Assembly: GCF_000143415.4 (NCBI RefSeq)
Contig: NW_003314266.1
Coordinates: 3,009,964-3,073,963 of the forward strand
From: Selaginella moellendorffii
Taxonomy: Eukaryota > Plantae > Lycopodiophyta
Length of the DNA: 64,000 nt
Direction: 5' to 3'
Below the pieces are notes generated by a model that was not told the DNA's origin, did not search any database, and worked only from the letters and a program-made list of their open reading frames with translations. Positions 9,327-40,281 of this stretch are shown here, in pieces (positions within the stretch are counted from its first letter, which is position 1; each line of letters begins with the position of its first letter). A program made the translations under genes and the position numbers.

Positions 9327-10357
9327 TTTCGGAATCAAGCTTCATTCAGCTTGAAGATTGTGAAAAACCTAAATCCAGCATCTGATTTTATAGCGAGCCA
9401 AGTCAAGTCCAAAGGTATGAGTGCTATCTGTATTTTGCATAGGATGGAGTGAACACACCAAACCATCATGAAATATTCCTCCAAATATTCCTGGTGGAGC
9501 AGGCATGGCTCATGTCAAAACCACAAGCGTCTGCTACAAATGCCTCACAATCTTTTAGCCATAGCTAAAAGAGCAAGAATGCAGTAGAGATGCAATAGAA
9601 TAGCCTAAATTTGCTACAGATGAATCACTTTAGGATTCTGTTATGAATGCAGGTTGATGTGCACTTGATGCCATGGGAATGTGGCTCACCATATGTACAG
9701 TTGGTACTGATCAATTCTAATGTCCATGCCTCGTACCATCTGTATCTGTTGGATTAAAAATGTTATAGTCAAGAATAGCTCTTTACCTATTGTTCTTGAG
9801 AACATGTACCAGAACATCGGCCACATGTCTTAACCACTCAGGCACAGCCCCATGAAGGTCACATGCACACTTGTTAACTGCCAGAATAGCAGGTTGCCCA
9901 TTCTCGACAGTAATAGGCTAGTTGTTAGTCACTATTATATCCAAATTTATTCTCTTGCATATGCCCAATTCTGGCTTTGGGTAACCCACATCAAACATCA
10001 AATAAAATACAAACCATAAAGGCTGTGTTATTCATAAAATTGGTGTTCATACATCTGCCTCACAAGCACACATGCAATCCTGGCAGATCCTGATTGGCTT
10101 GGTTTTCACTTTTGGACACCTTAGCATATTCCATTAAGCCTTTGGCAGAATGACTGAGAATCCAATACCCATTCCGTGGATTCTATGAGTTTATATTATA
10201 GCCATGCCTATCTTCCATGCCCATCTATTATGATATTCTTTATATATCTGGGGTTACATGTTATTGAGTTTGAATAGTATTGGGCTAAATGACCTTTTGA
10301 GAAATTTAAATTCAAAAGCTTACATATATAAAAGTTTATATAATGAAGTATCAATAG

Positions 10358-10572
10358 AATTATTATCCACACTCATAAATTATTCACTATAATGGAACTT
10401 TACATCAATGGTCTTGGAATTATTATCCAAGAGAATCCATTTATGAGTTATTGACTATAATGGAACCATCTTTGAATCCATTTATGAGTTATTCACTTTA
10501 ATGGAACTCTACAATAAGAATTATTATTTAAGAGAATCCACTTATGAGTTATTCACTATAATGGAACCATCC
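10358..10572. repeat. Degenerate AT-rich direct repeats (core TTATTCACTATAATGGAAC x4)
   Basis: The core recurs near 10380, 10448, 10488 and 10549, with related GAATTATTAT / GAATCCA(T/C)TTATGAG segments between copies. Confidence 0.7.
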
Positions 10573-13500
10573 TTTTGCAGCATAATGAGGAATATTATGA
10601 GCTTAGCAAATGTAGATATGTAATAAGGCATAGTCCCTACCAAATAAAAAAGGCCATCCTCAAAGTAATATTAAGAATGAAAATATTGAAATGTTAAGTC
10701 ATTAGTAAACTATATAGGATTTTCAAAAACATCATGAAGCCCTTAAATCCACAGTTCAACTTTTTGAGCCTCTTAAACATCATTTATAAAAAGAAAATCT
10801 AACTTTGCATATTGTGACATTGAATATTGAGCATAACAACTACTAACAGCATGAAATACTCATTTAGAAAATCCACTAACACTAAAACAATAAGCTTCTT
10901 AAAAACAAAAAAAGAGAAAGAAAAAGGGAGAGTGTCGCAAATGTGATTTTATGTATCAAAAGTTAATTGTTAATGAGTATTTTCAAATATTTTTCTTTTA
11001 CTGCCACAACAACAAAAGGTTGATATCTCTAGACCCTTTATCAATCTTTATCCAAGTTAATTGAGAAACTAATTAGCATATGTACACTTAGATCGAAAGG
11101 GCATTAAGGAAGGAAATTCTAAATTATTATTTAGTCAACCATATTTGACATAGTGATGAAAAATTATGTTGTTTATTTGCATTTGCTAGTATTAAGAACC
11201 CCTACAACATTAAGCAAAGTCTCCTAATATTTGTTAAATGATAGTATTGTGTCAACCAATGCATTTTCACGAATGTATTAATCTTATTTTAATTTAATCA
11301 GTTATTTATGGAAAGTGCCTAGATTTGCCAATTGGACATATTTATAAAATGTAGAGATTATATTGAATATGATGGTGTTGGTCTCATCTTTAAATTCATA
11401 ATCTAACATTATTCCATATTTAGTAAGTTTTTAAGCTTGTTATAAAAACTCTTGGGACTAGAGTGAAAGCCTAAAGTGTGCTTTTATATAGGGAGGGGGT
11501 ATATAGGGATTTTAAATGTATAATAAGGAAAGTGGGTAAAGCGAGCATAGCTAATCAACTTGAAACATCGTTTGATTTTCTATTATGCGTGTTTGTTCTT
11601 GTTTTGCATCTAACTTAGTCTAAGTCTAAACTCCATACCATGTTAGTTGGTGAAGTATTTATATCCTCACTTTAAACCACTCATATGCTAAAATAACATT
11701 AAATTTTATTTGGCTTTGTTTTGAGTGTTTATTTTGGCATTAAAATGTTAGAAACTCTAAAACTATTTCAATATTGCTCTATGTTTTTTTTTCTTTCACT
11801 CTTTAACTATATCCTCTAAAGTTTGCTTCCATCCTTTTGTTTGGCCCAAGGCTCTAAAACTCAAGCCCCACTCCATTGGCTTTAGCATGCATATCTAAGG
11901 GTTAAGGTTCTTTATCCCATGGTAATTTATTATAGTACTATCTAGTGAGATTGGGTAATTAGTCTTGTTGCATACAAGGAGATGAAAATGGTAATTTGAA
12001 TGGGTATACATGTGGTTGCTAGGGTATTAGATGCATTCCTTAGGTAAAGATTTTCATTATTATTTTGAACTATATTGTATGAGAGCTCATAAGATAGATT
12101 TCAGATGTACCATTTGTATAAATTTATGCTTGGGCAAATGAGTGAGATATATTAGCAACATAAAATTATACTTTAAGCTGGTAGGATTAATGTTAGCCTT
12201 TTAATGGTTACCATAAGTTGCTATTATGAATTGCTACTATGAATTATTACTATCTTACCAGCTGCTGATAATCTCCATCGCTGGAGCAATGGAAGCTCTT
12301 GCTTGCGACCTATAGTGCATCCATCGATCGATCGATCGAGAATGCTCCCCTGGAGTCAATCAAGAAAGATGCGAGAGAGGGAGAGAAGATGGATCAATCG
12401 CATTATCGTCGGCGTCCATAAGGGAATCCGCCATTTTGATGAGACTAGAGGATTAAAAGGGCAAGAGTAAAGTAACAAGGGTAAAAGAAAGAGAAAATAT
12501 TCCGTTAGACAGCGCCGTCAGTGGTCCGTACAGGAAACAAGCGCAGTTTTTTAACCGCGCCGTCACTGCAGATAAAAGAAAAACGCAAGAGGTCCTACTG
12601 CCGTACTCTGTGTACGGCACGCTAACATCGCTGTTTGGAAGCTGATAGTTCAATGTTGGAGGTGTCTATCACTCAATGGATCAATCAAAGCTATCAGTGA
12701 GGTTTCGAAAGCTACGAGAGCTCTTTTGATCTTTTCCTTTACTTTATCTTAGGTAAAAGTAAACCTTCATTAGGTTTGCTATAAGTGGTATGATTTATAG
12801 CTACTAGTAGATCCTTCCTAGGTAAAATTATAAATGGATTAATCAAGACTATAGGGATTAATCTATCAATTCTAGTAGTTATTGTTGTTCTTTTTTATAC
12901 TCTTTTCTTAGATTGAACTAAAGGTAGTGCAAATGTAAATTAAAGATTTAGTCAAGTTGAATCCAAAAAGAGTGTCATCATAGAAAGGATTAAACATGTG
13001 AATCATCTTTTGTTCTCTAAAATATAATTTGTAATAAAGTATGATTTTATTACTTATGTTCATATCATGCAATCAAGAATCTATACATTGATACATATTG
13101 GTTATAGTGGTCTTTAAATGGTGTGCCATGAGATGGAAAGTAATGAAGTGTTAAACCATTTTGATGAGGCTTGCCATTAAAAGGCTTTTTCCAAGGAACT
13201 TCATTATTGCTCTTTAAATAGCTTGGTGTTAGATTAATTTTAAGTTTAGTTAAAAAGTGAATGGCATAAGATTATTTATATTGTGAATGAAGTTGGTGGT
13301 GTTAAATGTTATAAATCTCTTTCAATAGAGTATGGCATTTATGTTATATTTTATGATTACATTGGCACTTGATATTAGTGTAAACCTTTGTGGTAGTAGC
13401 ATAGACTTAGTTTGTGATATCACTTGATTGATGACCAAGTCATTATATTTTTTATATCATATCCTTGTGATTATGAGCAATGTGTTTATGAAGTTTTTTG

Positions 13501-14236
13501 TTAAACGATGATCAACCCCAAAATGGTTGATAGTGACACTAGTCTATTTGCAATTAGTAGCATTATAATAGATTTAACTTCTTAAAAGTGATCCATTATG
13601 ATAAGTTAGTATTGATATCTTATTTCCTTAAGAACTTTCTCATTGAAAGTTAAAAAGGTTGTAACATTCACTTACTATAGCTTGTTAGTTAATCTCTTGG
13701 TACTTATAATAAGTTGTTAAATAGAGAAAGTGAGATATTGATATTGTTAGCACTTGTATTAGTAAAAGTGGTATTATTAAATCAAGTAATAAAGAGTTCT
13801 GATGAAGAGGTAAATGTTTTGACTTGTATATCTTCCCAAGTAGAGTAGAATAAGGACGCTTAAGCAAAATGGAGTTATGCTTAAGCTTAGGCATCCAAAG
13901 AAAAAAGACTGAACCTAAGCAACACTCGTTATAGACAAATATAAAGCCCACCTTTATAAAATAATTTGCTATATAACTTTTATATTTAAGCATACCTCTA
14001 GCCTTATAAAGATTTCTACTACTATTTAACAATAGTTATCTAAATTCATTACCTTTCTTGGAATATTTTATAATATCAACAAAATATAAAATATGATATG
14101 ATGATTATAAAAGGAGTCATTTTATACAAAACATTGGAGCGTTAAGTTTGGAGTGATTTTAGTCTAAGTTTTCTCTTTTAGTTTTATAATATATTTTATT
14201 TAAGTTTTATGTAAGTTTTGACTTCTTGGGAGGCTA

Positions 14237-14445
14237 TTTAGCCTAGTACTATTCAAACTCAAGGATGCTTAAGCCGAAATATCCTAAAATTTTACTAATT
14301 AGAAAAGGGGTACACTTTTATTAATACGTGTAAACTCTTGAATTTGGACTTCTCAGAAGGTCATTTAGTCCAGTATTATTCAAACTCAAGGCCTAAATAT
14401 CCCAAGATCTTTAACCAATTAGAAAAAAGGGTGCATTTTTATTCA
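14237..14445. repeat. Direct duplication (about 127-bp period) in the DNA flanking the MULE
   Basis: ATTTAG..AGTA.TATTCAAACTCAAGG...AATATCC...AATTAGAAAA.GGGT occurs twice. Confidence 0.7.
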
Positions 14446-14491
14446 TGGGCTTTTTCCCTTTATATTTAAACCCATATGGATCGTCACTCAA

Positions 14492-17400
14492 GCCTCCCAT
14501 TAAACACCATCTTAATTCATTCTCTCTCTACTTACCTAATGATGATGTGGCATCGGCCCTTCTTTTTGTTTTATCTCCAGCGCACTCCCATCTCCCGTCC
14601 GTCGCCGCTGTGCACTCCCGCCCGCAACTATCGCCCGCGTGCAGCTCCCACTTGCCCACTCACCCTCACGGCTCCCGCCCGCACTCCCACCCGCCCCCGC
14701 ACATTTAAAATTACTTCCACGTGGCCAGAGCCCCAACACTTGCCAAATTTCAATCAGCACGCCCTAGTCCACCCATTCACACCGGATGGTTGCCCCATAA
14801 GTGACTAAAAATGTTTCTGTTTTTTTTATGATCAAGCATGGCAGCAGCACATCAATTTCTAGAGGTAAACAATCAATTCAACTTCATATTGATTTAAGAA
14901 AATCATTTAGGATCCCCCATGGCTTGATGAGGTGCAAGAATTCCATGAAAGGGATTATTTTTGTGCAGATGATTTAGATTGGAATTTGTCTAAATCTAAT
15001 GAAACTATAGCTCCTATTGTGTATATATTACAAAATAATGTGAACAAGTTTTCAGATGGTGAGAGGAGAAGGGGTGATAAAGTGGATTTTTGGCAATTTT
15101 CTAACAAAAATCGTGATCTTGGAGATTTGAAACAACCCAAAAACGCAAGCTTTTTTATCATTAATCAGGTATATTTTTTTAACAAAATATAATTACTAAC
15201 TTCTTGATACAGGTATTGGTGTGAATATGGAAAACAAGATGCTCGTGAAACATCCTCTATTATGATTGCTGAATCTACACCAAAGTTAGAACCTGGAAGT
15301 AGACTAAGTCAAAATTCTAATAAGCGGGGCTGCCTTTTGCAATTTTTTGGTCAAATAGTTTTACAAATGGCCTGATTATGTGCAAATTACATATTATCAT
15401 AGAGAGCATTGCGATAAGAATAAGATTCCTTGTCATGGTCAACTTGATTTGACTGGAGGAAAGTCATTATTTCCTCAGAAGCTTTCAGCAAATATTTGGC
15501 ATTGGGTGATTCATATGATTCAGTAGGATTTCACATCAAATCAGATTTATGATGAGTATATACAGATTGTGGGAAGGAACAAGTCAGCTGGTGAACCTCC
15601 TCATTGAGATGATTTTCTAACTATGCGGGATATCAACAATTTGCATAGGAAGTATTCACTTCCAACTTATCGATTACATAAAAATGATGCACAGAGTGTA
15701 CGTATTTGGAAGAACACAAATCCCGAGAAAATATTTTTCTATCAAGAAGGTGATTGAGGTAAAGATTGTTTTACTATTGGGATTTAGACAACTTGGCAAC
15801 TACAAAAGATGGTGGACTTTTCAAATAATAATTTATTGAGTCTTGATGCAACTTTTGGAATTAATCGCTACAAGGTAAAATTTTCATTAATTTTTAAGTG
15901 AATAATATTTAATAATTTACAATTCCCATTATACACCATGCTTGCTTTTGATTATCATGGAAATGATATTCCAATTGTATGGGTTTTAACTTCTAGTGAG
16001 AAAGGAGAACATATGAAGAATTGGATGATAGCTCTTAAAAAATAAGTTTTAGAACACATGCCAAATTAGAAACCACAGGCGATAATGATTAATGATGCTG
16101 AAGCAAAGATTAATGCTATAAGGTAATTAATTTGATATAAAATAATTTAATTGTTTTCTTCTATATAGAGCTACATTTGATTGTCAAATATTATTATATA
16201 TTTGGCATGTAAGGAGGAATTGGCTTAAACATATTATTTGTAAAGTGAAATCTTGGGATATTAGGATGGAAATATGGAAACGTTTTAGAGATATTATGTA
16301 TTATTCAATTCATGCAACTTTTCATGATGATAATATTATGTGAGCTGAAATTAAACAACTTATTGAACATTTTGAGGTGGATTTTCAAAATGAAGTAGCC
16401 TTTATCAAGTATTTTTAAGATGAATGGAAGGATAAAGTTGGTAAGTGAATTAATATTTTAATTTTTATAATTTATTTTAATTTATATTTGATAGATATGT
16501 GGGTTGTTACTGCTTGAAATTTCCCTCATGCTAACAAGGAAACAAATAGTTCGATTGAGGCATTCCATACAAATATGAAAGCTATACTCTTGTTTGAAAA
16601 AAAATATGCTCACAATCAAAGGATGGATTGGGCAATTCATCAACTTACTACTAAGGTTCATGCAAGGTACTGGTTTACTAGTTATTGCAAAAATCATGGT
16701 TTTGTCCGAAACCATATATATGAAAAACTAATCGATGGTGTGATTGTTAAAGCAAGAAATATTAACGACTCTCAAGTAAAATTCGATAAGGACAATACTC
16801 ACAAATCCTATGTACAATTCTCTTCAAATCTAGCTATATGGTATCTTGTTGTCGGAGGTGAAGGCCACAGTGATTGGGCTTTTTCAACTTAGTGTAATTG
16901 TCCAACCAAAGAAAACTTTTGCAAGCATCAAGCAAAAGTTATTATGTTAAAACAAAGAGAAAAAACCGATTGGACTACAACTAGTTATGAAGTTCAACCA
17001 TCACAATCACATGCAATTTTAGAACTTGGGTTGGATGACTTATTTTATCGTTATCAAGATTTTGAAGCACTTGACTTGGAAGCTATGACAGAGGTAATTC
17101 ACTTATTAATGAAAATTTTGAAATACTTATAAAAATTTGAGCAGGAAGAAAACATTTATCAAAATGTTTATCATGAGTAAGAAATTCAATTGGAGACTAC
17201 ATTAGAGGTAAACTAGCATATTTTATATACTAATATATATGAATATTGAGCAGGAAGATATCCATCAAAATATACAGCATCAACAAGAGATTCAGCTAAG
17301 GACTACTATAGAGGTAATTTACACTAAGTAAATTTTAAATATTGATATGAACTTTGAGCAGGAAGATATCACTCCATCAAAAGTTACAAAAGCGATATTA

Positions 17401-18148
17401 CAGCAAAAGATGATAGATATCTTACAAGATCTTTTTGATGAAGAAGCTTTTTTATCTATGGTTGATGAAGATTTAGAAATAATACAGTAGAAGGTTGCAA
17501 CTTTTAAAGCTAGGCCAAATGATCTTATTCATCCTACAACAGAATTTCAACAGCGTGTTGATAGTTATGGTACATCCTTGAAACGAGCAAAACCTTTGGT
17601 GGAAAGAATTACAGGTAAAAGAAAAACTTCTAGTAGTCTAGAAGCAACTTCTTTTACTAGGCAGAGGAAGACAAGAAAGAAAAGCTCTTTAAACGAAAAA
17701 CTCAATCTTAGCAAATAATAAATAAAAAAACAAACTCTTTACATACTTACATTGCATATATTCAAATTAGTGAGAAGATTTCATAAGTTTACCACTCCTA
17801 ATGGTCATCCATGACACTCATTGGCCACGTAAAGCACGTAGAAAGGCATCCACACGTGTGCTGATTGAAATTTGGCTAAGTGTTGGGGCTGTGGCCACGT
17901 GGAAGTAATTTTAGGGCGCATGCTGGGCGTGGGTGGATGTGCGGGGGCAGGTGGGAGTGTGGGCAAGAGCTGTGAGGGCGAGTGGGTGGGTGGGAGCTGT
18001 GTATAGACGATAGCCGCGGGTGGGAGTGCGCAGCAGCAACAGACGGGAGAGAGAGTGCGTTGGAGATAAAACAAAAAGAAGGGCTGATGCCATGTCATTG
18101 CCAGGTAAGCGGAGAAAGAATGAATCAGGATGGTGTTTAACAGGAAGT
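14492..18148 (+). mobile_element. Mutator-like DNA transposon (MULE) with both ends present
   Basis: Long inverted termini at 14492-14760 and 17858-18148. 9-bp TSD GTCACTCAA (14483-14491) / GTCACTTAA (18149-18157). Internal MULE transposase remnant. Confidence 0.92.
14838..17718 (+). pseudogene. Intron-containing MULE transposase with SWIM zinc finger, inactivated by stops and frameshifts
   Basis: Motifs SLDATFGINRYK|FPLYTMLAFD, MINDAEAKINAI, IWHVRRNW, TNSSIEAFHTNMK and SWIM CNCPTKENFCKH. Several in-frame TGA/TAA/TAG. End coordinates approximate. Confidence 0.82.
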
Positions 18149-18299
18149 GTCACTTAAGTCATTCCCTTTAATTGCTTATAATATATTTTTTCCCTTTATA
18201 TTTAAACCCCTATAGTCTTTTGAGTTGTTCCTTTTAATTGTTTATAATCTAAGTTCACGCTCTTATGAAAGAAAGTTAATAGCCACAACTCTCTTGAGA

Positions 18300-18700
18300 G
18301 CCCCACTCTCTTGACACTCTACCCCTCAAAACCAAATGTTAATCTCAATATGTGGTGTAATCCCTTAATTAATAAATAAAGTCAGACCCATCTTTTAACA
18401 TCCTACCCCTTAAGATCAAATGTTAATCTCAAAATATAATATGATTCTTCTAACCAACTAACAAAATTAGATTTGTCTCTTGACACCCTACCTTTTAGGA
18501 CCAAATGTTAATCTCAACATGTGGTATGATTTCTTTAGCCAATTAACAAAGTGGGACTTGAAACTAACTTTACCCTTTAAAATTAAATGTCAATTTCAAT
18601 ATATGGTGTGAATCCCCTAACCAATTAATAAAGTTGGACATAAAACCCCACTCTAATACCAAATGTTTTAAACCTATCTACCTTAACCAATTAAAAAAGA
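18300..18700. repeat. Degenerate tandem array, about 75-85 bp period, about 5 copies
   Basis: (C/T)AAATGT(T/C)AAT(C/T)TCAA recurs near 18333, 18417, 18502 and 18585, with a partial copy near 18660, each followed by a CCAATTAA-like block. Confidence 0.75.
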
Positions 18701-20199
18701 AAATGTATTTTTGTTCATGGGCCCTTTTTTCTATATTTGAACCTCTATAGATCATTTCTCAAATTGTTCCCTTTGGTTGTTTACATTTATTTCTTTAAAA
18801 AATATAAAAATTAGAAATTCCTCTCTTTTTCTCTCAAAACACAAGGCATGATGTGATATTAGCCACCAATTTTAAACACAATGATGTTATGATAATATGA
18901 AGAGAGGTTGAAGAATCAATAGGATCATTGTTAACTCTTTTATCAAAAGATATATTCTCAATCACATCATTGCTCCTCAAAATTCTTCTAAAGAACCGCA
19001 CTATAAGGATTTCCACAAGTGAAAATACATTTATATTCACCGCACAAAAAATGACAAGAGAGGAAATAGAATACTAAACTTCATATTTCTAATGTAAAAC
19101 TTCAAATGATCTCTTCCATGATTTATGTTTTATACTTTACTAAGTTGCTTTATAAGATTCATTGATGCTTGCTGCATGATCATTAAGCATCATTAATTTC
19201 TTTTTTTCTTTTCTCCTATACCTTTCCTTTTCTACATTCTTGATGGAAGTCATGAAAAATGAGTGGTTGAGCAAAGTTTAATGAAGGTGTTATTCTAATC
19301 TATTGTTCCTCATTAGATGATAGCTTGTGATTAAGTTTCTTTCATCTTCATGAAAAACTAAAAATGAGAGTTCTTTATTGAGAGCAAAAAGTCCTCATTT
19401 TAGAATAATTCCAATTCTAACTTTATCGAAGACTCTCCTTATTCTTTCAAAAAAATTTAATAAAGAAAGGAGTTATTAAGAAAGTGCTCTTAGATACTTT
19501 TAGAGGGATGAAACTTACATAGTTTACAAGTGGATGCAATATTAGTAGTGGGGATTAGAGTTTTATGCTTATAAAGAAGATATTCAAAACAATAATAGAT
19601 TAAGAGATATCTTCATTGCAAATGTAGAATGGATATATGAGTGATAGTGATGAGCAATTTTGGAATAAATTGCTTTGGCTTATCAAAATTATATATTAAA
19701 GTCTTGTTTCCAAGATTCTCACCACTTTGCATTTGATAATTCAATTGTTGTCATTTAAAATTAAGAATTTCTCTTAGCCATTTCCAACATTCTTATAAAG
19801 CATTATGAAGTGAAAAAAATTTGGTTACAAATTGACACCTTTATGATGGAGTTACATTTGAGGATGCATACCACTATAGCAACTTGCCTTATAGCAATCC
19901 AAAAGAAAATATAAAAAAGGTCTCTAAACCCAAATATACATACAACCCCTAAACTCTATTGGTTAGCTCTTGCAGATTTGGATGAGCACAAGGTTTTGAT
20001 GGTTAGGGAGTATCGCATCCTGACACACTAGGGATTATACCAAGTCAAAGGAGAAGCAATGCTTTGCAAAGCACACATAGAGTTTGGCAGCTAGACGAAC
20101 GAATATCGGCAAACAAAACGAAGTTATAATCTAGGGATTTGCAGGCTTTGAACCAAAGAAGCAAGGAAAAACGGAGTACGACAAAAACTCTTCACTGCC

Positions 20200-20710
20200 A
20201 TTTGGTCTCATCTTGCCAATGGAGCCACCCGAGCAGCACATCCAGCAGCTTCCCGTTGATAAAATCACCGTGGCTGAGGAGTCATCGAGTTCTTCTGGCT
20301 CAGAGCTCGTCCTCTACAAGTAAGTTTCTCTCGTACATAGAAAAGAGAAGTTTGTCAATGACTTAGCCAACTCGCTCTTCACTTTTTCTTTCTCAGGAGA
20401 ATCACGGAAGTTAAAGAACAGCGCCAGAAGGTGGTCGTGGAATTGATCTGTACTCTCTAGTCGTCCAAAAGTTCCTCGACCCGAGGCTGGCCTGGTGAGA
20501 TCCTGAGCCTCACAGTGAACGAGAAGGTGGACGGCAACTGTCAATCCGTGCACGGCAACATGTAAAATCCATGGATCCAAGGTTACCACGGATGATCCTT
20601 GGCTGCCGTTTTGACTGAAGATTGTCAGCACCATGTTCTAAACACGGCAGTGTAAGTGGCAAAATCATCAAGCTCTTGAGAGGAGTCGAGTTTTCCCGCG
20701 GCTGGGATGG
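20200..20710 (+). pseudogene. Inverted, internally deleted copy of the DUF760 gene at 22074-23503, intron retained
   Basis: GAGCAGCACATCCAGCAGCTT...GAGCTCGTCCTCTACAAGTAAGTTTCTCTC...TCAGGAGAATC.CGGAAGTTAAAGAACAG matches the reverse complement of about 23130-22800. GAGTTTTCCCGCGGCTGGGATGG matches about 22368-22391. Frameshifted. Confidence 0.88.
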
Positions 20711-20827
20711 ATTGACTTGTATTGGAGCATGAGAGTGGCTTTTGTCTTGACAATTAAATCCAAAACTAGCTTCCTGCCTTGGGAATGTTATTATTTACTA
20801 TTCATTTCCAGAAATTTTACTAAGAAC

Positions 20828-21232
20828 TTATGAACATTCATGAAATTCAACAGTATGTTTAGCATGTTCAAAACAACCTCTGAAGGACCACATATACCAA
20901 CCGCCCCAACCTGTAGTGGTATATTTTGCTGCACCAGTAAAAATTATTACATGATAAGTTTCATAACCCATGGAGAAGTCATCACTTTCTATTATTGGAT
21001 TTGGATCTGTTTTTTCCTTGAAGTCGTTCTCATTTGCTTGATTATATATAAAAATATTTACCTTATTTTCTTTGAGTTTTGAGTTGTAATAATCTAATTT
21101 ACACATCATAGAACTTTTCATATTTACAGGATTCCAACAATGGTCAAAAGTCTGAGCAATAGTAAAGATTATAGAACATGTAAATCCTAATACCAAAATA
21201 AGGATGAATGAACAAAACTTTACTAATCCCAT
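20828..21232 (-). CDS. Small secreted Trp/Cys-containing protein, copy A (134 aa, intronless)
   Basis: ATG at 21232, hydrophobic signal peptide. Clear paralog of 24184-24597 (shared HCWN, CKLDYY, NIFIYN, PNPI.E.DDF, AKYTTTGWGGW..WSF.GC..H..HTVEF.E). Confidence 0.82.
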   Translation of the reverse strand: MGLVKFCSFILILVLGFTCSIIFTIAQTFDHCWNPVNMKSSMMCKLDYYNSKLKENKVNIFIYNQANENDFKEKTDPNPIIESDDFSMGYETYHVIIFTGAAKYTTTGWGGWYMWSFRGCFEHAKHTVEFHECS

Positions 21233-22073
21233 ATTTGAAGAGAATTTTATATGTCTATTACACTCGTTGTTAAATGGAAATGGACTATGATTTAAATGAA
21301 GTTTCAACAATAAAGGACAAAAAAACATTGTTAACACTTTCTTAAGTCACTACACCAGCTGTCTCTTGTTTTTATTTTTCTGTTATTATTCTCTCTCTAT
21401 GTATGGTAATTGTATTGGATTTTTTTAAGCTTAGAAGAAAATTATTTCTCAAGAAATGCTAGTAAAATCAAAAAATGTATCAATATTTTTTGGCAATTTT
21501 GATATTTATACATATATAGCTAGAATAGTCTTAATTGTCATACCAAGACAACATGAACCATCCTTTGTATTATGAGTCTTGATAATCTTAATTTATCCCT
21601 CTCACTATGCTTTATGATTTTAAGAACAGTAATATATTACTACTTGGACAAAGTAAAAAAAGAATTACTAAATTTTTTATTAATATAGATTCAGTATTGA
21701 TGTGAATAAATCTAAAGCACTAAGATTTTAAGCAGATTTAAGAAAAATTGTGTAACTAAAAGTAGGTATTATTAATATATATGTAGTTAATGACTTTTTA
21801 AATCTTGAATTGAATTAGTAAAATACCATATCATGTTTTCTAAGGTATATTTAAATTTATATAATTGTCTACCTGTCTACTATTTGCCAGAAAATTCATT
21901 TTTAAAATTGCAAAATTAAATTCTAGATTTTTGCTAGAGTATATATATAAGGGCATTCCAAAGATGTAACTTGTTTTGCATTCAATCAACACAGTTTGAA
22001 AAAGAAGCTGGTGCTCGCAAGCTCCAATACAGATTACTACAAACTCCAAGTTCAAGGGAGTGTCACAGACATC

Positions 22074-23503
22074 TTAGCCAACCAAGTTGTAGTGAGAATC
22101 AACGTGAGCCTCGGCGTCCCACAAGAAGCTCCCAAACACCACCGCTTCCGTCACCAATCTCCTCAGCCCGGACAAGCTGATGGTAAACGAGTCACCGGCG
22201 AGCAAAACCACGGATCCATCCGGGGCGATCTCCGCCTCGGGCTTGCCAAACAGCGCCTGTGTCTGCCTCTCCACAACGTCCAAGCTCTCCTTGCAACGCA
22301 GCGTCGCAAACCTCTGCAAGCTCTCCGGGTCCAGCGACATGACATAGCTCTTGAGCTTGCTCGGCTTCCATCCCAGCTGCGGGAAAACTCCGGATCCTCC
22401 AAGCCCGCCTCGAGTGGTCGACGATTTTGCCGCTTGCATCGCTTGCACTGCCGCGTTTGCCTCGGCCGCCAGCTTCTCTCCCTCTGCGTCAGTCTTAAAG
22501 TCGAGCTCCTCGGACACTCCCGGCCCTGACTCCACTCCTTGTTCTTCGTCCTCGTGTTTGTCGCTGCTCAGAGCTTTCTTCATGCTCAGGTCGAGCTGAT
22601 ATCTCTGGTCGAGACGCCGGAGGAAGTAGCCAAACACCACCGTCGCCGCATAGAGATGGCCGATCTTCATCTTGCTGGCTTGGACCAGAGTGTATGGCTC
22701 TTGGTAGTGCGGCGAGGGGCGGCCGAGGATCATCCCGAGGTGGTCTCTCACGACCTCAAGAACCTCGGCCGAGTGGATCGATTCCATGTCGCCCAGCACG
22801 GATTGCCAGTTGCTGTCCACCTTTTGGTTCGCGGGGAGGCTCGGAATCTTGGGAACCAGAGCCAGCCTCGAGTCAAGGAACTTTTGGACGACTAGAGAAT
22901 AGATCACTTCCACGACCGCTTTCTGGCGCTCCTGTTCTTTAACTTCCGCGATTCTCCTGAGAAAGAAAAATAGAAGAGAGAGTTGGCTTACGTCTTTCCA
23001 TTGACAAACTTCTCTTTTCTACGTAAGAGAGAAACTTACTTGTAGAGGACGAGCTCTGAGTCGGAAGAATTGGTCGACTTCTCAGCCGCGGCGTTCTTAT
23101 CAGCGGCAAGCTGCTGGATGTGCTGCTCGGCTGCTTCTAGGAAGAGATGAGGATGGCTCTGGAGCAGCGAGACTAGGAACTGGCCGATGGGCGACTCGGG
23201 CTCCCAAGGACCGACCATGGAAGTGGCACTACTTCTTCCACTCTGAGCTTTGACAATGTGACACGGACCTCTTCCCGGCCTGGAAAACCCATTTTTTATC
23301 CTCAGCGAGTCCCTCTTCCCAAAGAAACTTGTGGAAGCCTGCGAAAGAGACGAGAGAGGAAGCTCAGATCTAGCCACATCTTGCCCAAATTTCCCTACCG
23401 TGAAGTGGATGCTGCGCTTGGCACCGACGCTGGATTGCTGCGCCCGGCACGAGCTGCTCGCAAATCCGCCGCTGCTGGAAGATCCCACTTGCACTGCCGC
23501 CAT
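22074..23503 (-). CDS. Plastid-targeted DUF760 / UV-B-induced-protein-like gene (exons 23503-23040, 22956-22074)
   Basis: Ser/Ala-rich transit-like N-terminus, ESPIGQFLVSLLQSHPHL, LYK|RIAEVKE, LYAATVVFGYFLRR, ERQTQALFG and EAVVFGSFLWDAE typical of DUF760. Confidence 0.85.
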
Positions 23504-24183
23504 CGCCGAGACCCGCTGAGACCGCCTCACGCTCTGACCTAAAAATGAAAATCTCACGCGACATTTTGACCCTTTGGTGTCGGAGGAATCCACGTGGCTG
23601 CTTCGCAATGTTCCACGTCGGTCAAAATTCTATGATCCACTAGTTCGTTCGGTGACTAGTTGTTAACATATGTAAAAGGAATATTGGGTGAGGAATCAAC
23701 TCCATATACGAAAGTGTTAAGTGGATTAATTTGTAGATGGATTGCTAGAGCACAAATGAATTTATTCCATTTGATTCGTTCGTCCCTTGCTAGATTTTAT
23801 GTCAAGTTTTGAGTATACTTGTAAGCACCAAGAATCTCCAGTTAGCTTTCTCCAAGTTTTCAATGATACTCCCAGCATCCAGCACTATCACTAAGTTTAG
23901 AGCTGCCTAGTCCTAAGAAAGACTTCACATTAACATTGGTCAATCTTTTCGTAATTGGATTTTAGTTGTTGGCGCTAGAAAACTTCTAAACACTGCAAGA
24001 TTTTATAATGTTTATTTGTATTAAAATCTGTTGTTCTAAACCTACTGAGAACCATAGGAGAAAGATTTTTACACGTGTCTATATAATTCATATACACTGT
24101 TTTTCATAAATGGTATATATGCTTTTGTTATTAGTTTAATATTTTTATTATATACAAATACAACTTATTCATGCTTTCCGCCC

Positions 24184-24597
24184 ATGGCATTTCCAAAGTT
24201 TTATTTATTTAGTTTTATTTCACTTTTACTATATACAAGTTTTATAATTGTTACTCTTTCTCAAGGATTTAATCACTGTTGGAATACTGATTGGAAAAAA
24301 ATAATGACTTGTAAATTAGATTATTACAGATCTAAACATAAAGGAAATGCTAATATATTTATATATAACAAATCAAAGTCTTTCAAAGAAGCAATAACTC
24401 CAAATCCAATAGAAGAAACAGATGATTTTCAAATAGACAGTGATGATTTGCAAGCAATAGTTTTTATTGGTACAGCAAAATACACCACTACTGGTTGGGG
24501 TGGCTGGGATTGGTGGTCTTTTACGGGTTGTTACAAACATGTCGATCATACTGTTGAATTTTACGAATATGGACCAAATAAGAATTGTGCAATTTAA
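24184..24597 (+). CDS. Small secreted Trp/Cys-containing protein, copy B (137 aa, intronless)
   Basis: Open ORF with signal peptide; conserved blocks shared with 20828-21232. Confidence 0.85.
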   Translation: MAFPKFYLFSFISLLLYTSFIIVTLSQGFNHCWNTDWKKIMTCKLDYYRSKHKGNANIFIYNKSKSFKEAITPNPIEETDDFQIDSDDLQAIVFIGTAKYTTTGWGGWDWWSFTGCYKHVDHTVEFYEYGPNKNCAI

Positions 24598-24983
24598 TAT
24601 GAATTCCTCTTGTACTTTATATTTTATAAAATAATTTGCTATTGCATGCATCAAGGCTTGTTAATTATTATTTAATAATTTAATTAATGAAATATGGTAA
24701 AATAAATCAGAATATACTAGAAAGTGTTTAAGAAAGTTTATAAATTATAAATACAAAATTAATCTAAATGAATAACAACTGTTAAATGGTAGAATATTCT
24801 AGAATATTTAAATAAATTTCATTAAGTCTAAGAGTAGAAAGACCAATTGATTTTATAACATTCTACTTGGTTTTTACTGCAATTGCCAATAATAATAGTA
24901 ATACTGTTTATACACTTCTCCCACTTCCAAGGGATCTCGCTAAAAAGGAAAAAAGAAGAAAAAAGAAAAAAAAAGGGAGAGTT

Positions 24984-28682: not shown

Positions 28683-30314
28683 TCAAAGCTTACGGCATTT
28701 AACGGTATATGCCGAGACGGTGGCGGAATAATCACCCGCGCTAGCGGAATATCCTTGGATGTTTCCAAACAGCACGCATCGCCACTCTACCGCCTCTGGG
28801 ACGTAGGGCATCGTCCGCGCGAGCTCTTGTGCGCCCTCCACGTGGCCGGCCCTAGACAGGAGATCTATCATAGCGCTATAATGTTGCTTAGATGGAGAGA
28901 TGCCAAAGTCTAAAACCATGGAAAGAAAGAAACTCCTTGCTATGGAGAGCTGTCCAATGTAGCTAGTGGAAATTAGCAGCAAAACAAAGCAAATAGAGTC
29001 CGGTGACACGTCGAAATTCATTAGAGTAAAAAGATAGCGTGCGTGGTAAAAATGCCCATTTTGGGCATATGCCGCCAGCAAGGCAGTCCACGTCACAAGG
29101 TCCCTTTGGGGCATTGCACGGAAGAGCATCTCGGCGTGGAAAACATGTCTGTTGTAGGTATATCCTAGTAGTACGGAGTTCCACGTCGGCATTGTCTTCT
29201 CTGGAGCTTCGTACAGTGTACGTTTTGCTAGATCCATTTGCCCATTGTGGGCATATGTCCAAGTTATTAAGTCGTACAATCTCGAGTCCCGGTAGGGCAT
29301 TCTTTCGTACAGGTCCACTGCGTAGTCGAGATTCCCATGTTGCGAATATGCTCCCATCATGCACGTGTACGACACAACGTCGTGGACTGGCATCTGGTCA
29401 AACGTACACTTGACGAGTTCTAGATTCCCTGTTTGGGAATATGCCGCGAGCATTGCGTTCCAGGCAATGGAATCCCTCTCTGGCATAGAGTTAAAAAGAT
29501 TCTCTGCCTCTTGAACTAAACCATCATTGGAATATAGCCCCAGTAGCGAAGTGAACGAAGACAAGCTTCTCTCTGGCATGGAATTAAAGATTCTTTCAGA
29601 TTCGAAAAGTTGCCCATTTGTGGCATTTGCAAGAAGAAGAACGTTCCATGCGATGATATCCCGCTCTTGCATTGCATTAAAAACAACCGCGATTTCATCA
29701 AAGCAGCCATGGTTAGCATAAACTCCCATGATAGCCGTACAAGAGACAATATCCACCTCCGGCATGGAGTCGTACACCAGCTTTGTGTGTAAGAGTTCGC
29801 CACCTTCGGCATTTGCCGAAAGCAAACACGTCCACGAGACTAAACTCCACTGCGGCATTCGATCGAACAAAACCTTCGCAGCGTCAGTATCGCCAAGTTT
29901 TGAGCGGATCGAGAGCATCGAATTCCATGACACTAAGTTCTTCTCGGGCATGGCGGAGAAGAACCTCGCCGCAAGCTCGAATTCCCCGTTAATAGCGTAC
30001 GCTGCGAGCATGGACGTCCACGAGACGATGTTTCGTCCGGGCATTTCCTCAAACAGTCGCTCAGCCTCGGGCAGCTCACCATTACGAGCGTTTGCAGTGA
30101 GCATCATGTTCCAGGCGACGAGAGTTTTGACGGGCATTTGCTCGAAGGTCTGCCTGGACTCTTTCAAGTTTTTGTTGCGGCAGTAGGCGTAGAGGAGAGT
30201 CTCCCACGAGAAAGAGTCTCTGGCATTGTCTTTGATGGAATCAAAGACTTCTCTGGCTCGCTTCAAGTCGCCGGTCCTGCCATACATTTCAACAAGTTTT
30301 ATCTGACAATTCAT
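28683..30314 (-). CDS. PLS-class pentatricopeptide repeat protein with E1 and a truncated C-terminus, no DYW
   Basis: Long run of about 31-aa repeats (MPERDSIAWNAMLAAYSQTG...) and QHYSAMIDLLSRAGHVEGA...MPYVP. Start uncertain; first in-frame ATG is at 30314. Confidence 0.85.
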   Translation of the reverse strand: MNCQIKLVEMYGRTGDLKRAREVFDSIKDNARDSFSWETLLYAYCRNKNLKESRQTFEQMPVKTLVAWNMMLTANARNGELPEAERLFEEMPGRNIVSWTSMLAAYAINGEFELAARFFSAMPEKNLVSWNSMLSIRSKLGDTDAAKVLFDRMPQWSLVSWTCLLSANAEGGELLHTKLVYDSMPEVDIVSCTAIMGVYANHGCFDEIAVVFNAMQERDIIAWNVLLLANATNGQLFESERIFNSMPERSLSSFTSLLGLYSNDGLVQEAENLFNSMPERDSIAWNAMLAAYSQTGNLELVKCTFDQMPVHDVVSYTCMMGAYSQHGNLDYAVDLYERMPYRDSRLYDLITWTYAHNGQMDLAKRTLYEAPEKTMPTWNSVLLGYTYNRHVFHAEMLFRAMPQRDLVTWTALLAAYAQNGHFYHARYLFTLMNFDVSPDSICFVLLLISTSYIGQLSIARSFFLSMVLDFGISPSKQHYSAMIDLLSRAGHVEGAQELARTMPYVPEAVEWRCVLFGNIQGYSASAGDYSATVSAYTVKCRKL

Positions 30315-30346
30315 AACAACGAAAAAGGTCACCTCTGGAAGATTTT

Positions 30347-32505
30347 TCAAAGGTTCCTCTCGTTGGGCTCCAACCAAGGATGACCTACGAACTCAAAGAC
30401 TTCTTTCTCGTTCTTGCAGATGACTCGAGCACCTTTGCTATCAACCTGAAGATAGGAGAAGCTTGTTTCCATAGAGAAGCATGTAAACAGTTTACTAACC
30501 TTGTGACGCTTGTGCTTCTCATACAAAATTGTTCTATACAAGCCAGTATCATCTAGTTTGTATCCTTTTTCATTTGCTAGAATTCGCAGCCTGTGAAACA
30601 ACAAAAGTCGCAATGCTATTTCTCATCGTTAACGCTACGTATGTACCTTCTGTTTAGAACATCGTTGCCAGTCCAAGCAATGAGACCAAATGGATATTGC
30701 TCCCAAGAGTACACCTGAGTAGAATCTGTGATAATCAAAAGATCGTTTGAAACACAAACCTTAAAATCAATACGATGCCGCTGCTCTCTTCCCGGATACT
30801 TGCATAACCCAAAGTAAGTATCCACAGCGTCATCGTTCAGTTCCTGCAATGTTGTTCATCTCATTAGCACAGGGAAGTGTTATTTCTACCTCGTGGTAAC
30901 CAATCAGCAAGTCTTCGGTGAGAAAATCAATGTCTTTCAGTCGTTGGACTAAGCGCCTCAGAAATCCCTTGTGACTGCAGAAAACTTTCAGTCAAAACTC
31001 ATAACAACGTAAGCAGACCTTGTGCCATCCGAGTGAGTGACAATCATGTCCATATCCCCTACCAGCGACTTCCCACGTCTATAAGAACCTCCACAAACAA
31101 CGGATATCTACAACGCAAGGATAAGCCGAGTGAAAAAACATATACCCCGGGTTGAATAGCACTAGCAATTTCTTGCACCAGATTTTCCACGTAGTTCGCC
31201 TAGAACGAAATGTCACTCGGGAGAACAAATCTCTAAATTGGATACCTCGCTGCGTGGAATTTTTGCGTTGATATCCTCGAAATATTGCAGCCCAAGCCGT
31301 TGGGTACGTGTAAGTGACTCGTCATGCCTTAAGTCCTCCAGGGAACGATGACCTTTCTCGTAATATTTCAAAGCGTTCGATGGCCCAATCCCCCACACTG
31401 AACCGAAAAGAGAAACAGTTTTCACCTGTAAATCTCAGGATGTCAAGTCTTCAGAATTACAGCTTTTACAAACGCACCTTTTCATCGTCTCTAAAATGCT
31501 CCAGTTTTGAAAGTTTCCCAGTGGATAGAATTTCCTGGATCTGTGAACCGACAACATGAAACACGAAAAAGAAGTAAATACGTACGTGATTCTGTAGCGA
31601 CTTTCCGATTGATGGAGCATTCTTCACTTGATCTACACTCGTAACTTGATATGGTAGCTTTTCCAGATAGGATATCGCCTTGTGATAGCTATAAGATCTT
31701 CTGTTGTCTCCAAGACCTGAAAAAAGTTCATGAACGTTTTGATGTACTCTTGCCAACAGAAATGCTCACCGTTTTTGTATATGTCCCGGAGTTCTCCAAA
31801 AGGGCCTGTAATATTTTGGTTGAGGTTTGGAGGAGCATAAATCTGTTACACAATCTAGATATCAAACACGAGACCAATAAAAAGAGCCGCTTACCTCATT
31901 TTGCCCCGTGGAATCATCAGGTTCCTTTGGGAATACGAGTGCAGACCTCCATTCTTCACGTTTAGTATCACTGATGGCAGCATCAGTGTCTGAGTTTAAG
32001 GATTCAGTAGCACTCTCGTCAGTCGCGGTGCAATCAGTTCCAGTGCCAGCGGATTCTTCAGCTGAGGCACCATGATAATCCTGAAACAAATTGTAAGACT
32101 CTGCAGGTAACCTTTGCCCTGCCTTGAGACAGTCTTCCAGCCAGTCGTATTTCAAAAATGACTGAAAAAGAGAATGTAAGAAACATATCCAGCAAGAAAT
32201 AAGGAACTCACCACTTTAAGCCGTTTCAGCCGTTTCAATCTCTTCCAATCTTTGCTCTGGTCCAAGTGCTGCGAAGAAACAGCAAAGACATGAGTCAGCT
32301 GTTTTGTTACGTGATCTTCTATCTTTCCTCCCAATGCAGCGAGCTTTGTCTTCCACACCTAGCAACGCAGCACACAATTCATATCGTAGAAAAAAATACC
32401 AAAACTCCCGGCTACCTGAAGACGAAGCTGGACCACACCAGCCTCCACAAAAAACCCAACAATCCCATCGAAAGAAAGCTTATCACTGGCGGTGGAAGTC
32501 GTCAT
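30347..32505 (-). CDS. POLL: DNA polymerase lambda (family X, BRCT domain), multi-exon
   Basis: BRCT (LRLQ|VWKTKLAALGG...THVFA...WLEDCL), lyase domain (RSYSYHKAI), HhH VWGIGP, GSYRRGK..GDMDMIVTH, RHRIDFK, AWTGND and C-terminal WLEPNERNL. Start approximate. Confidence 0.92.
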
Positions 32506-34975: not shown

Positions 34976-37924
34976 TATTGGAACATAGTCATCACCATGA
35001 CTTATAAAGGGAGTACATAAGGATTATATCCCTTTGATTAATACATATGTGTGTCAGCTGTATATTCTTGGTATTAAAAAAGTAAAATTAGAAAGAATAT
35101 TTTTTTAAGCCAGTGTTGTAAGTGGTGAGGAGGTTGCCAAGGGGCTATTAGAACAAGGGATACTAATTTGTAAATAATGGGAAAATCTAGTGGATTTGAG
35201 GGATTAAAACTTCTTTTATCCCATAAAAATGATTTTAAATATTTTTTAATTGTTGTTGAAAGGAAGAAAAGTTTTAAGTTAGCCATTGGAAAGGAGTGGC
35301 CACTATTAAAATGGAAATAAAGCAAAGTTTAAGAAGTGGTCCTTAAAGCAAACAATAAGATATGAAAAGTGTAGAGGATTTCAAAGATGTTGACAACACC
35401 ACAAGAATAATCTTGATTAAATGAGTCAAATATGAATATTTTAAAAGTAAAAAATGCCACCACTTCAGCTGAGGCATAACAAGTGTTTCATTAAATTTAT
35501 TGTGACTAGTTATTAGCATTAAAAATAAACACATTTTGACAAATGATAAATTATAAAAAGTAATGAAGAAAGCTTCAAAGTATATTAAGAAAATGACCAC
35601 TCTTAGAGGACAAATTACATAGTATAAAGTCTAACTTTGCAAATATTATAAGGGCATTTTTTATTTTAGAGCTTTAATCAAGACAACAACATTTAGGATT
35701 ACAAATCCAGCACTATATAAATTTCATTGACATTTATGAGGGTAATTTGGAGAATTCACAAAAGAGAACTCTTTAGAAAAGTTTGTAGCAATGATTGCAG
35801 CTCAATTATTAGAAAAAGGGTCTTTCAAGCCATCAAAGGTGGTACACTCAATTAAGCAGGTAAGAAAAAAGGCCATGTGTGTTTTGTGCCTAAATTTAGT
35901 ATTGGTTTAAAAATGCGTTAGAAGGGCAACTTTTGGATTTAATGTATTATATGATAGCAAATAAGGCTTTCTTACAAAAAATAATATATAGAAATTTTTC
36001 AGTAGATGTAAGCATGGCTAATGGTGAGTCTTTACATATTATTGTTTATGAATTTGTCTATAGAGGTGTTTTGTTTATACCTAGCTTAATTTAAAATTTG
36101 CTATTAGTTTCTCAACTTATAAGTCAAAGTGTTTATTCTTGTTTTCACTGCAATAGTGTTGATTTCAAGTTCCTAAGATTTACAATTGCTAAAAAGGACT
36201 TTACTATCTCTCTTCACAACTTTAAGTATTAGTAAATATAACAAATATCACTGATGCTTCTATTTTTCATCTATGGCATGCTTGCTTTACACATGCTAGA
36301 TGGTATTAAGTTAAGGAAGTCAATTCTTTAATATATAAAGTTCCCTCCCTCAATAGAGTGACAATGGACAATTATGAAGCATGTATATGGGGTAAAATGA
36401 AGAAGAAATCCCTCTCCTAAAATGCCAAGACTCAAGGTACTTTAATTCTAGATTGAGCTTCACTAAGTAAATCTTGAATGAAAATTTTTATCATTTTCTA
36501 ATTACTAATGATTTTTATTGTTTCTTAAAAATGATTTTCATAAACTAAAAGATCAATAAGTTTCATAATTAGATTAATTATGTGGAGCACAAGTTTGCTT
36601 GCACCTTACATACTTTTTGAGTGGACAGAGTACGAAAATTAATCTCTAGAGAATTCCAACTCATCTTGCACTAAGATGGTTTTCATACATTTGGTTCTTG
36701 CAATTACTATTTAGTTGTAGAGTAGAAAAGAATGATTTTTTAAATGGAGAATTTGAGCAATTAATATACATTTAATAACCTCATACTTTTGAAGTGGAAG
36801 GCAAAGAGACTTATATGTTTAATTTAAAATAATCCATCTATAGTTTTAAACAATCCTTGTAAATTTAGTATACTACTTTAAATAGATTTTTTCCAATGTT
36901 GGGTTTGTGCACATTGGAACATTTATATTTGTCACAAAAACATTTTGGTTAGAGTATACATTGATGATTTAATTATGATAGAAAAAACACTCTCTCTATA
37001 TTAGTTTAAGGAATAACTTGTGAAATGGTTGAAAATGAAAGATCTTGGTAAGTTTTGCTTAGATTCTTGTAACAAAAAGGCATGAACACTTTCAATCCAG
37101 TATATTAAAAAGTTTTTAAGTGAATATTAGCAATTTTTCACTCAATCATATACTCATATTCCATCATTGCAAGTTCATAAAATCTCTCAAGATGATGAAT
37201 CTTGTACTGAAGTGGAGAAAAGGTAGATGCAAATTCTTTCATATCAAAATATTATAGGAGTGATGATATCTTTAGTAACAGTAAGTTGTTTAGATATTAC
37301 AACAGAACAAATATCCACTCTCAACTTGGAGTTTCAATGCACAAAGATTGAAGATATTAGTATGGATTCTCAAAAATGATATAAGATGGTGAATGTGGAT
37401 TTAGTAAGGGACTTTAACAATCAAAGATCAATAATAAAGTACAATTTCAAATTTTTTAACATTATTGTTTTTTGGTGTAGTTAAAAATAAAGAAAAGTTG
37501 CACTTTCCATCTATTAAATTGAGTATAGTATTGTGACTAAAATAGTTAAGGAATCATTGTGAATGTGAAGATTTTACTTAGACAAAAATTTTGATATTCA
37601 TAGAACACATGGAATGCAATCCTCAACCCTATTCATCAACATACACTTCAAAATATTTTGCTATTTTATATGTGAAAGGATTTAAATGAGAGAAATTCAG
37701 TTGCTCACATATCCACAACCAACTTGATAGTAAATTTATTGACAAAGACATCCTTGCTAGTGGCTCAATTTGAATGTTTATAAATCAAACTTAGGTTTAA
37801 GGGTTGAGGTTAAGTTAAGTTATAGCATATTCACTAGTGTAATTTATGAAGGTAAGAAGTATGTAAGTATTGTATCCCTTTGATTAATAAATATATATGT
37901 TTGCCTATATATTTTGTCTCAACA
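34976..37924 (+). mobile_element. Ancient, heavily decayed Ty1/Copia element with both short LTRs
   Basis: Shared LTR core TATCCCTTTGATTAATA near 35026 and 37874; termini T(A)TTG...CAACA; TSD-like GCCCC/ACCCC; PBS-like TGGTATT at 35069. Eroded motifs HLWHA, FLNGE, SIYSFKQS, YIDDLI and LLTK occur in Copia order. Confidence 0.72.
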
Positions 37925-40158: not shown

Positions 40159-40267
40159 ACGCGGACTCTGACCTGGCACAAGACGCGGCAATGACTCGGC
40201 AGGATTGCTGACGCGGACATGACCTGGCCCACGACGCGGCGATGACTCGGCAGGGATGCTGACGTGG
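40159..40267. promoter_or_regulatory. 51-52 bp tandem duplication in the RAMP4/PPR bidirectional promoter, ending in UPRE-like TGACGTGG
   Basis: Units begin ACGCGGAC at 40159 and 40211; a third begins ACGTGG at 40262. Each full unit has ATGACTCGGC. Confidence 0.6.
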
Positions 40268-40281
40268 TCTTCTTCTTCTCC

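Follow-up and report, generated by a model that had tools for sequence, protein, structure and literature searches.

Two intact open reading frames in AT-rich DNA

Two small open reading frames (ORFs), here called ORF1 and ORF2, lie about 3 kb apart in a 64,000-nucleotide stretch of the genome of the lycophyte Selaginella moellendorffii (NCBI RefSeq assembly GCF_000143415.4, contig NW_003314266.1, positions 3,009,964 to 3,073,963 of the forward strand). This whole stretch is referred to below as the window, and positions are counted from its first letter. The pair had been singled out by a first reading of the letters alone, without database searches (the sequence-only reading), as two diverged but intact frames of 134 and 137 amino acids (aa), and both were found where that reading had placed them. 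ORF1 occupies 20828..21232 on the minus strand, stop codon included, and ORF2 occupies 24184..24597 on the plus strand, likewise with its stop. Both are intronless, they are divergently oriented so that they point away from each other, and their products look like secreted proteins resembling a bacterial family named YvgO. ORF1 could also be read from an in-frame upstream ATG (166 aa) or GTG (169 aa), but the similarity to ORF2 begins at the ATG at 21232, which was taken as the start.

The N-termini of both proteins are hydrophobic, with a mean Kyte-Doolittle score over residues 6–25 of 2.5 in ORF1 and 2.1 in ORF2. A signal peptide of 26 residues is predicted for each: 21155..21232 (minus) in ORF1, with a hydropathy of 2.54, a low-confidence N-terminal helix in the structural model and a cleavage site placed by eye after ..FTIA, and 24184..24261 (plus) in ORF2, with a hydropathy of 2.08 and cleavage placed by eye after ..VTLS. 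Residues at positions -3 and -1 of this likely cleavage site are small in both proteins. Because of these two features the products look secreted and would be expected to enter the secretory pathway. Once the signal peptide is removed, mature parts of about 108–111 residues are left. The four cysteines and the conserved motif quoted in that reading are present in both mature parts. The cysteines align at positions 32, 44, 120 and 133 of ORF1 and 32, 43, 116 and 135 of ORF2, and the motifs of the ORF1 domain are NIFIYN and GWGGWYMWSFRG..HTVEF.

The two frames stand out from the surrounding genes by their composition, as had been claimed. Their GC content is 0.31 (ORF1) and 0.29 (ORF2), and that of their third codon positions (GC3) is 0.24 and 0.17. 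Four neighbours (a ClpC exon, a DUF760 exon, a PPR gene and a TRAPPC12 gene) have GC values of 0.57–0.60 and GC3 values of 0.72–0.76, and a fifth neighbouring ORF, at 41979-44012, has 0.51 and 0.57. The spacers that flank ORF1 and ORF2 are 19–34% GC, so that the composition of the frames is that of the spacers. They are the two longest ATG-initiated ORFs with less than 36% GC in the window, the next being 105 and 102 aa long. The AT-richness is not the signature of a freshly acquired donor sequence, because both copies are old (synonymous divergence, dS, about 0.65–1.2) and both are AT-rich. Open frames of 80–93 aa also lie on the opposite strand of both ORFs (20840-21082, plus; 24373-24654, minus); they rank among the longest AT-rich ORFs of the window and are probably a by-product of codon bias. 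Neither ORF1 nor ORF2 was found in a collection of 15 billion proteins in which their annotated neighbours are present, and for this reason we conclude that both are missing from the public annotation.

The frames have been kept open by selection

The proteins encoded by ORF1 and ORF2 are paralogues with 54% identity (BLASTP, E 4e-47), which bears out the earlier suggestion of a duplicated family. Similarity between the two at the DNA level begins exactly at both ATGs and ends near the stops, and no similarity beyond chance was detected in the flanks, compared over 600 nt on the upstream and 400 nt on the downstream side. The ratio of nonsynonymous to synonymous divergence (dN/dS, or omega) was 0.46 by the NG86 method, with a bootstrap 95% range of 0.24–0.80 and none of the 300 replicates reaching 1, and 0.25–0.33 by YN00 and maximum likelihood (ML). 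In substitution-only simulations of neutral drift at the base composition of the ORFs, a frame stayed open in 0.1% of 20,000 runs at the observed nucleotide divergence of 28%. Because so few neutral frames survive and omega is below 1, chance is excluded as the source of the two frames. ORF1 and ORF2 are, or recently were, protein-coding genes under purifying selection; the view that their intactness implied selection was thus correct, and dN/dS is not near 1.

Relationship to the bacterial YvgO family

The sequence-only reading had also likened the two ORFs to a C-terminal pattern of small secreted bacterial and fungal proteins. To look for such proteins, the GGWINWAF segment of the pattern was back-translated and scanned for in one genome per bacterial or archaeal species. 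It matched 76 loci, compared with about 3 expected by chance according to our own estimate, and 74 of them translate into a single family of proteins of 115–276 aa that end in ...YNVMVFN...YGIWVFE.G.FTN.GDGGWINWAFRGWFDR.G..V.F. The bacterial pattern is therefore real. Its carriers are spread over Bacillota, Actinomycetota and Cyanobacteriota and include Bacillus, Paenibacillus, Shimazuella, Streptomyces and other actinomycetes, Nostocales and Microseira, as well as a Melainabacteria bin. NCBI names the proteins of the Bacillus subtilis group "stress response protein YvgO" and the rest "stress protein".

A profile built from 63 non-redundant bacterial proteins recognized ORF1 with 34.3 bits and ORF2 with 19.6 bits in the best domain, along with four plant relatives described below: a Ceratopteris protein (P0003) with 23.7 bits and three other fern-type proteins with 15.5–16.8 bits. 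Whole-sequence scores of the six plant proteins were 34.3, 23.8, 20.0, 17.0, 16.9 and 15.6 bits; the maximum reached by shuffled plant sequences (n = 3000) was 7.9 bits. All six matches share one register and fall in the C-terminal domain. In ORF1 the domain covers residues 55–132 (20837..21070, minus), which correspond to profile positions 106–178 of 180, and in ORF2 residues 47–128 (24322..24567, plus), corresponding to positions 102–178. ORF1 alone matched 63 of the 63 bacterial proteins in phmmer, with up to 29.5 bits. When the plant and bacterial alignments were compared with hhalign, they were joined with 97.0% probability (E 1e-10) over 84 columns, a span that takes in the helix before the sheet (WKDAM..AL versus VK.LM..AF). 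Eight residues (F98, G108, G111, W112, W115, F117, G119 and F130) are invariant in 45 of 45 aligned sequences, and V128 is shared by every plant sequence and 38 of the 39 bacterial ones. Selecting the bacterial set by a motif that resembles the plant one makes the comparison mildly circular, but a six-residue motif cannot yield 34 bits or agreement over some 80 columns outside itself. The alignments thus give statistical support to the view that ORF1 and ORF2 belong, as very divergent members, to the bacterial family of YvgO "stress proteins", a relative of DUF7888.

Like the bacterial proteins, the Selaginella products are small with an N-terminal signal peptide (predicted in Selaginella), and the C-terminal domains of about 80 residues align in register through N-[VI]-x-[VI]-x-N ... 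F ... G-x-G-G-W-x-x-W-x-F-x-G ... and on to the V-x-F that closes the protein. However, identity between plant and bacterial members is only 17–30%, the plants have W in place of an invariant bacterial D along with four further plant-only states, and the region ahead of the helix is shorter in plants. The four Selaginella cysteines are without counterpart in the bacterial C-terminal regions inspected, and the plant genes sit in a eukaryotic nuclear setting. With regard to Pfam, three of four scanned bacterial YvgO-like proteins matched PF25411 (DUF7888) in the GGW motif, below threshold at about 13 bits, where the cut-off is 27 bits, and the plant members gave zero matches to it at E values up to 10. 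Profile and predicted fold thus put the plant proteins in a YvgO/DUF7888 superfamily, although Pfam's rule does not make them DUF7888 members. The three bacterial proteins scoring about 13 bits (loci L005, L007 and L013) are themselves named YvgO or stress proteins, and the Pfam model seems to cover no more than part of the superfamily.

An AlphaFold model computed from the alignment of 45 sequences had a mean predicted local distance difference test score (pLDDT) of 79 and a predicted template modelling score (pTM) of 0.70, with pLDDT values of 85–93 over the mature part, including the YvgO-like domain of ORF1. It consists of a long helix (residues 38–52) followed by an antiparallel sheet, against which the helix packs, and ends in the conserved aromatic hairpin G-x-G-G-W-x-x-W-x-F-x-G, with the V-x-F strand coming last. 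A model from the two paralogues alone was poor (pLDDT 49) and was discarded. The nearest cluster in the ESM Atlas, far ahead of the others, was a bacterial "putative Stress protein" with a template modelling (TM) score of 0.67 over 108 residues at 2.4 A, and 94% of its members carry PF25411. Foldseek found no match in the PDB (best E 0.44), a sequence search of the PDB gave a chance match only (E 0.25), and the best result of an exhaustive VIA-align search (Z 4.9) was at background. The structural check that had been proposed for the pair thus led to the DUF7888 stress-protein cluster and to no solved structure.

Relatives in ferns

An exhaustive HMMER search with a profile of the two Selaginella sequences against 1.84 billion cluster representatives returned four matches, one of which was credible. 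This is P0003, a 111-aa protein of Ceratopteris richardii (E 6.6e-5, 39 bits; hhalign 96.4%), matched over a single stretch that reaches its C-terminus. The other three (P0001, P0002 and P0004), long proteins with many short matched stretches, were taken for low-complexity matches. Relatives of P0003 turned up as hypothetical proteins in two Adiantum species, A. capillus-veneris and A. nelumboides, and on short plant-like metagenome contigs; only five proteins of the plant type were present in a set of 5.8 billion. The fern proteins are KP509_15G045600 (C. richardii), GOP47_0001366 (A. capillus-veneris) and L7F22_006840 (A. nelumboides). The exhaustive search, with its weak two-sequence profile, turned up no relative from seed plants, in agreement with the initial impression that no seed-plant family was recognizable. 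A word-based protein search with ORF2 and feature searches in a protein atlas gave no match, and of the metagenome scans the first gave none and a later one a single fern-like contig.

These fern proteins are the closest relatives found for the Selaginella pair. They have in common with it the T-x-G-W-x-G-W motif, a domain of the size of a secreted protein and a predicted signal peptide, the N-termini of the full Ceratopteris and Adiantum proteins being signal-peptide-like. Their identity to ORF2 is 27–29%, and their domain has one cysteine instead of four. They also show that the family is not confined to Selaginella, ferns having homologues with introns. In contrast to the intronless Selaginella ORFs, the fern genes have non-coding DNA within their range: the Adiantum gene takes up 733 nt although its product is 153 aa long, and the Ceratopteris gene has a range of 1908 nt and four isoforms. 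On the plant-like metagenome contig L077, which carries a fern-type homologue, a stop immediately ahead of the domain frame closes it, an AG precedes the frame, and a hydrophobic frame lying upstream terminates at a GT-type donor, so that this homologue appears to need a spliced upstream exon. Its coding composition is ordinary, about 50% GC in flanks of 36–39%. At 1740-1880 of the same contig lies a stretch that, by eye, is like a Cys-rich, transposase-associated plant motif.

The conservation of the cysteines in both Selaginella copies, their lack in the bacterial C-terminal regions and the single cysteine in ferns suggest that the four residues, which probably form two disulfides, were added for life in the apoplast.

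A possible extracellular function

YvgO was reportedly described by Manns, in 2012 and 2015, as an antifungal protein of Bacillus thuringiensis SF361. According to two reviews, the protein of that strain was purified as an antifungal active against Byssochlamys fulva (PMC8703302, PMC9755354; cited in PMC8985968), and the review table enters its mechanism as NA (PMC9755354). In B. subtilis, yvgO is in a list of the SigB general-stress regulon (PMC7824861), the YvgO signal peptide belongs to a Sec library (PMC5142396), and the protein is present in culture supernatant (PMC12020853). The literature searched that mentions YvgO describes no plant homologue.

The sole functional report on the family being antifungal, it fits the defensive role that had been considered for the pair. 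By analogy, the most likely function of the plant proteins would be that of an extracellular defence-type protein acting on fungi. More specifically, we tentatively propose an antifungal or wall- or membrane-binding role outside the cell, centred on the Trp/Phe-rich hairpin, as a possibility somewhat short of even chances.

Origin of the plant genes

An ML tree of 70 rows and 169 columns, in which bacterial sampling was motif-biased, has three long branches, with 8.3 changes per column leading to the ferns, 6.0 to Selaginella and 2.6 to all bacteria; a branch supported at 87/76 sets the bacteria apart from the plants. No bacterial phylum was consistently the best match of the plant proteins, and the cyanobacterial members lie amid Bacillota and not beside the plants. 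Five states (I60, G100, A102, T106 and W109) are found in six of six plant proteins and in none of 39 bacterial ones, W109 replacing the invariant bacterial Asp next to the GGW motif, and they favour one origin of the Selaginella and fern genes. As a separate matter, the cyanobacterial and Melainabacteria proteins (loci L001, L014, L016, L034, L047, L070 and L024) fall in two places inside Bacillota on short branches, a placement that suggests transfers among bacteria.

The family is broad in bacteria and, among eukaryotes, was found in one lycophyte and a few ferns, within searches in which the plant profile had low sensitivity. Given this distribution, the most economical reading is a transfer from a bacterium to a plant, and the most likely course of events would be one old transfer before the split of lycophytes and ferns, then loss or non-detection in other plants, then a local duplication in Selaginella that gave rise to ORF1 and ORF2. 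On the whole we consider it fairly likely that the two frames are real, unannotated genes for secreted YvgO-like proteins that came from such a transfer and were then duplicated. The horizontal acquisition put forward by the sequence-only reading thus fits the distribution seen within these searches, while the phylogeny proposed as a check gave no nesting in bacteria.

Several observations weigh against this interpretation. In the tree, which points to neither a donor nor a direction, the plants are not nested within the sampled bacteria, and the bacterial sample, fished with one motif, is biased. The evidence that seed plants, bryophytes, algae and fungi lack the family is weak, because at E 0.001 a profile of two sequences did not have the power to retrieve even its bacterial members. 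Neither the two ORFs nor the fern relatives had any match in Pfam (E up to 10) or NCBIfam. The fold match depends on the alignment used for folding, which contains members of the bacterial family, and the antifungal role is carried over from a single bacterial protein in one Bacillus study. It is also odd that genes under selection should be extremely AT-rich while other genes of the genome are GC-rich. Finally, the expression check turned up no transcript: contigs from four RNA-type public runs, from four studies, leave ORF1 and ORF2 uncovered at every base, while the same runs cover the neighbouring ClpC gene and the DUF760 gene, the latter spliced at both introns. The highest share of sampled words of the 4-kb stretch was 0.31 among the 20 runs listed, which is about what the DUF760 gene alone would contribute. 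Such contigs drop rare transcripts, however, and their lack over the ORFs is an absence of evidence.

Because no RNA contig lies over either frame, the idea that ORF1 and ORF2 are silent relics, once functional but now unused and preserved by chance or until recently, stays alive at a low level. The lack of a gene model in any public annotation and a base composition equal to that of the surrounding spacers also speak for it. We nevertheless regard it as very unlikely, given that both frames are intact at about 28% nucleotide divergence when even one would survive neutrally with a frequency of about 0.1%, that omega is below 1 in every bootstrap, that conservation ends at the ORF borders and that the residues invariant across the family are retained in both copies. 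A wholly different assignment is offered by UniRef, which labels one fern relative (P0005, KAI5081623.1 of Adiantum capillus-veneris) "S-protein homolog". Plant S-proteins (self-incompatibility S1, PF05938) are, like the present family, small and secreted, but neither the ORFs nor the fern relatives match any Pfam family, PF05938 included, at E values up to 10, and they match the YvgO profile instead. The label is probably a misleading automatic one, and the chance that the pair are S-protein homologues seems to us negligible.

Two further alternatives concern how the family reached plants. Selaginella and the ferns might each have taken up the gene independently, the two donors being unsampled bacteria or other microbes. 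The two plant groups do sit on separate long branches that no supported branch joins, Selaginella is about equally distant from ferns (39 bits) and bacteria (34 bits), and the genes are intronless in one group and spliced in the other. The five columns exclusive to plants, including the W for an invariant D, are hard to reconcile with this, as is the supported branch with bacteria on one side, and we judge separate acquisitions unlikely. Alternatively, the family could be old in plants, by vertical descent or by transfer from the cyanobacterium that became the plastid, and lost or diverged beyond detection in most lineages. Carriage by cyanobacteria (Nostocales and Microseira), the very long plant branches expected of an old gene and a search sensitivity too low to exclude divergent relatives elsewhere all go in that direction. 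Yet there was one plant cluster only among the 1.84 billion representatives and just those five plant-type proteins in the larger set, the cyanobacterial members nest in Bacillota on short branches away from the plants, and the best scores of the plant proteins are not consistently cyanobacterial. We therefore think great age in plants quite unlikely and prefer a single old transfer before lycophytes and ferns parted.

Genomic surroundings

Between ORF1 and ORF2 lies a GC-rich, expressed and spliced DUF760 gene (21950..23545, minus; introns 22956-23038 and 23338-23397), which is covered by RNA contigs and was matched to PF05542 exon by exon with the exons unjoined (E 7.7e-23). Adjoining the 3' end of ORF1 is a partial inverted copy of it (20226..20711, plus), which corresponds to 22367-23133 (minus) in seven collinear pieces that are 77–96% identical, with deletions. 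The ClpC-type gene follows on the right of ORF2, its 3' end beginning at about 24859. Each ORF is thus about 0.3–0.7 kb from expressed Selaginella genes, all on one contig, and the neighbouring genes match S. moellendorffii RefSeq proteins exactly or at at least 90% identity (two intronless genes via clusters). Contamination is ruled out by the position of the ORFs between expressed Selaginella genes and by the spliced fern homologues. An origin from a transposon or repeat is likewise ruled out, since the AT-rich flanks occur only once in the window and those of one copy bear no relation to those of the other. Nor did the pair arise by a simple inverted segmental duplication of a unit made of the DUF760 gene and an ORF: the parts are not in the order and orientation that this would give, and at 81–96% identity the DUF760 fragment is much younger than the ORF pair at about 72%.

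Elsewhere in the window there are two long AT-rich blocks (10000-20000 and 35000-39000, 28–38% GC), whose longest AT-rich ORFs (16575-16892, plus, and 13685-13993, minus) had no Pfam match. The window also holds a cluster of four intronless PPR genes (28683-30377, 40264-41919, 41979-44012 and 48942-50189) and a cytochrome P450 ORF at 7776-9338.

Implications

The Selaginella and fern proteins extend into plants a bacterial family for which the one activity reported is antifungal and for which there is neither a reported mechanism nor a solved structure. If the preferred history is correct, they would be a further candidate case of transfer from bacteria to plants in early vascular plants, one common to lycophytes and ferns. 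The ORF1 and ORF2 proteins are small and easily produced, so that antifungal activity and structure are directly testable. For the annotation of this reference plant genome, the finding means that two genes under purifying selection have been missed, apparently since their composition resembles that of intergenic DNA. A broader and more speculative scenario, which we consider doubtful but worth stating, is that lycophytes and ferns hold unrecognized apoplastic defence proteins derived from bacterial YvgO, whose fold is without a counterpart among solved structures, and that the Selaginella genes, unannotated through their spacer-like composition (GC3 of about 0.2 against about 0.75), are silent in ordinary tissues and come on only under attack or in special organs. 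If this were true, gene finding based on GC content would be blind to a set of inducible, AT-rich genes under selection in the Selaginella genome.

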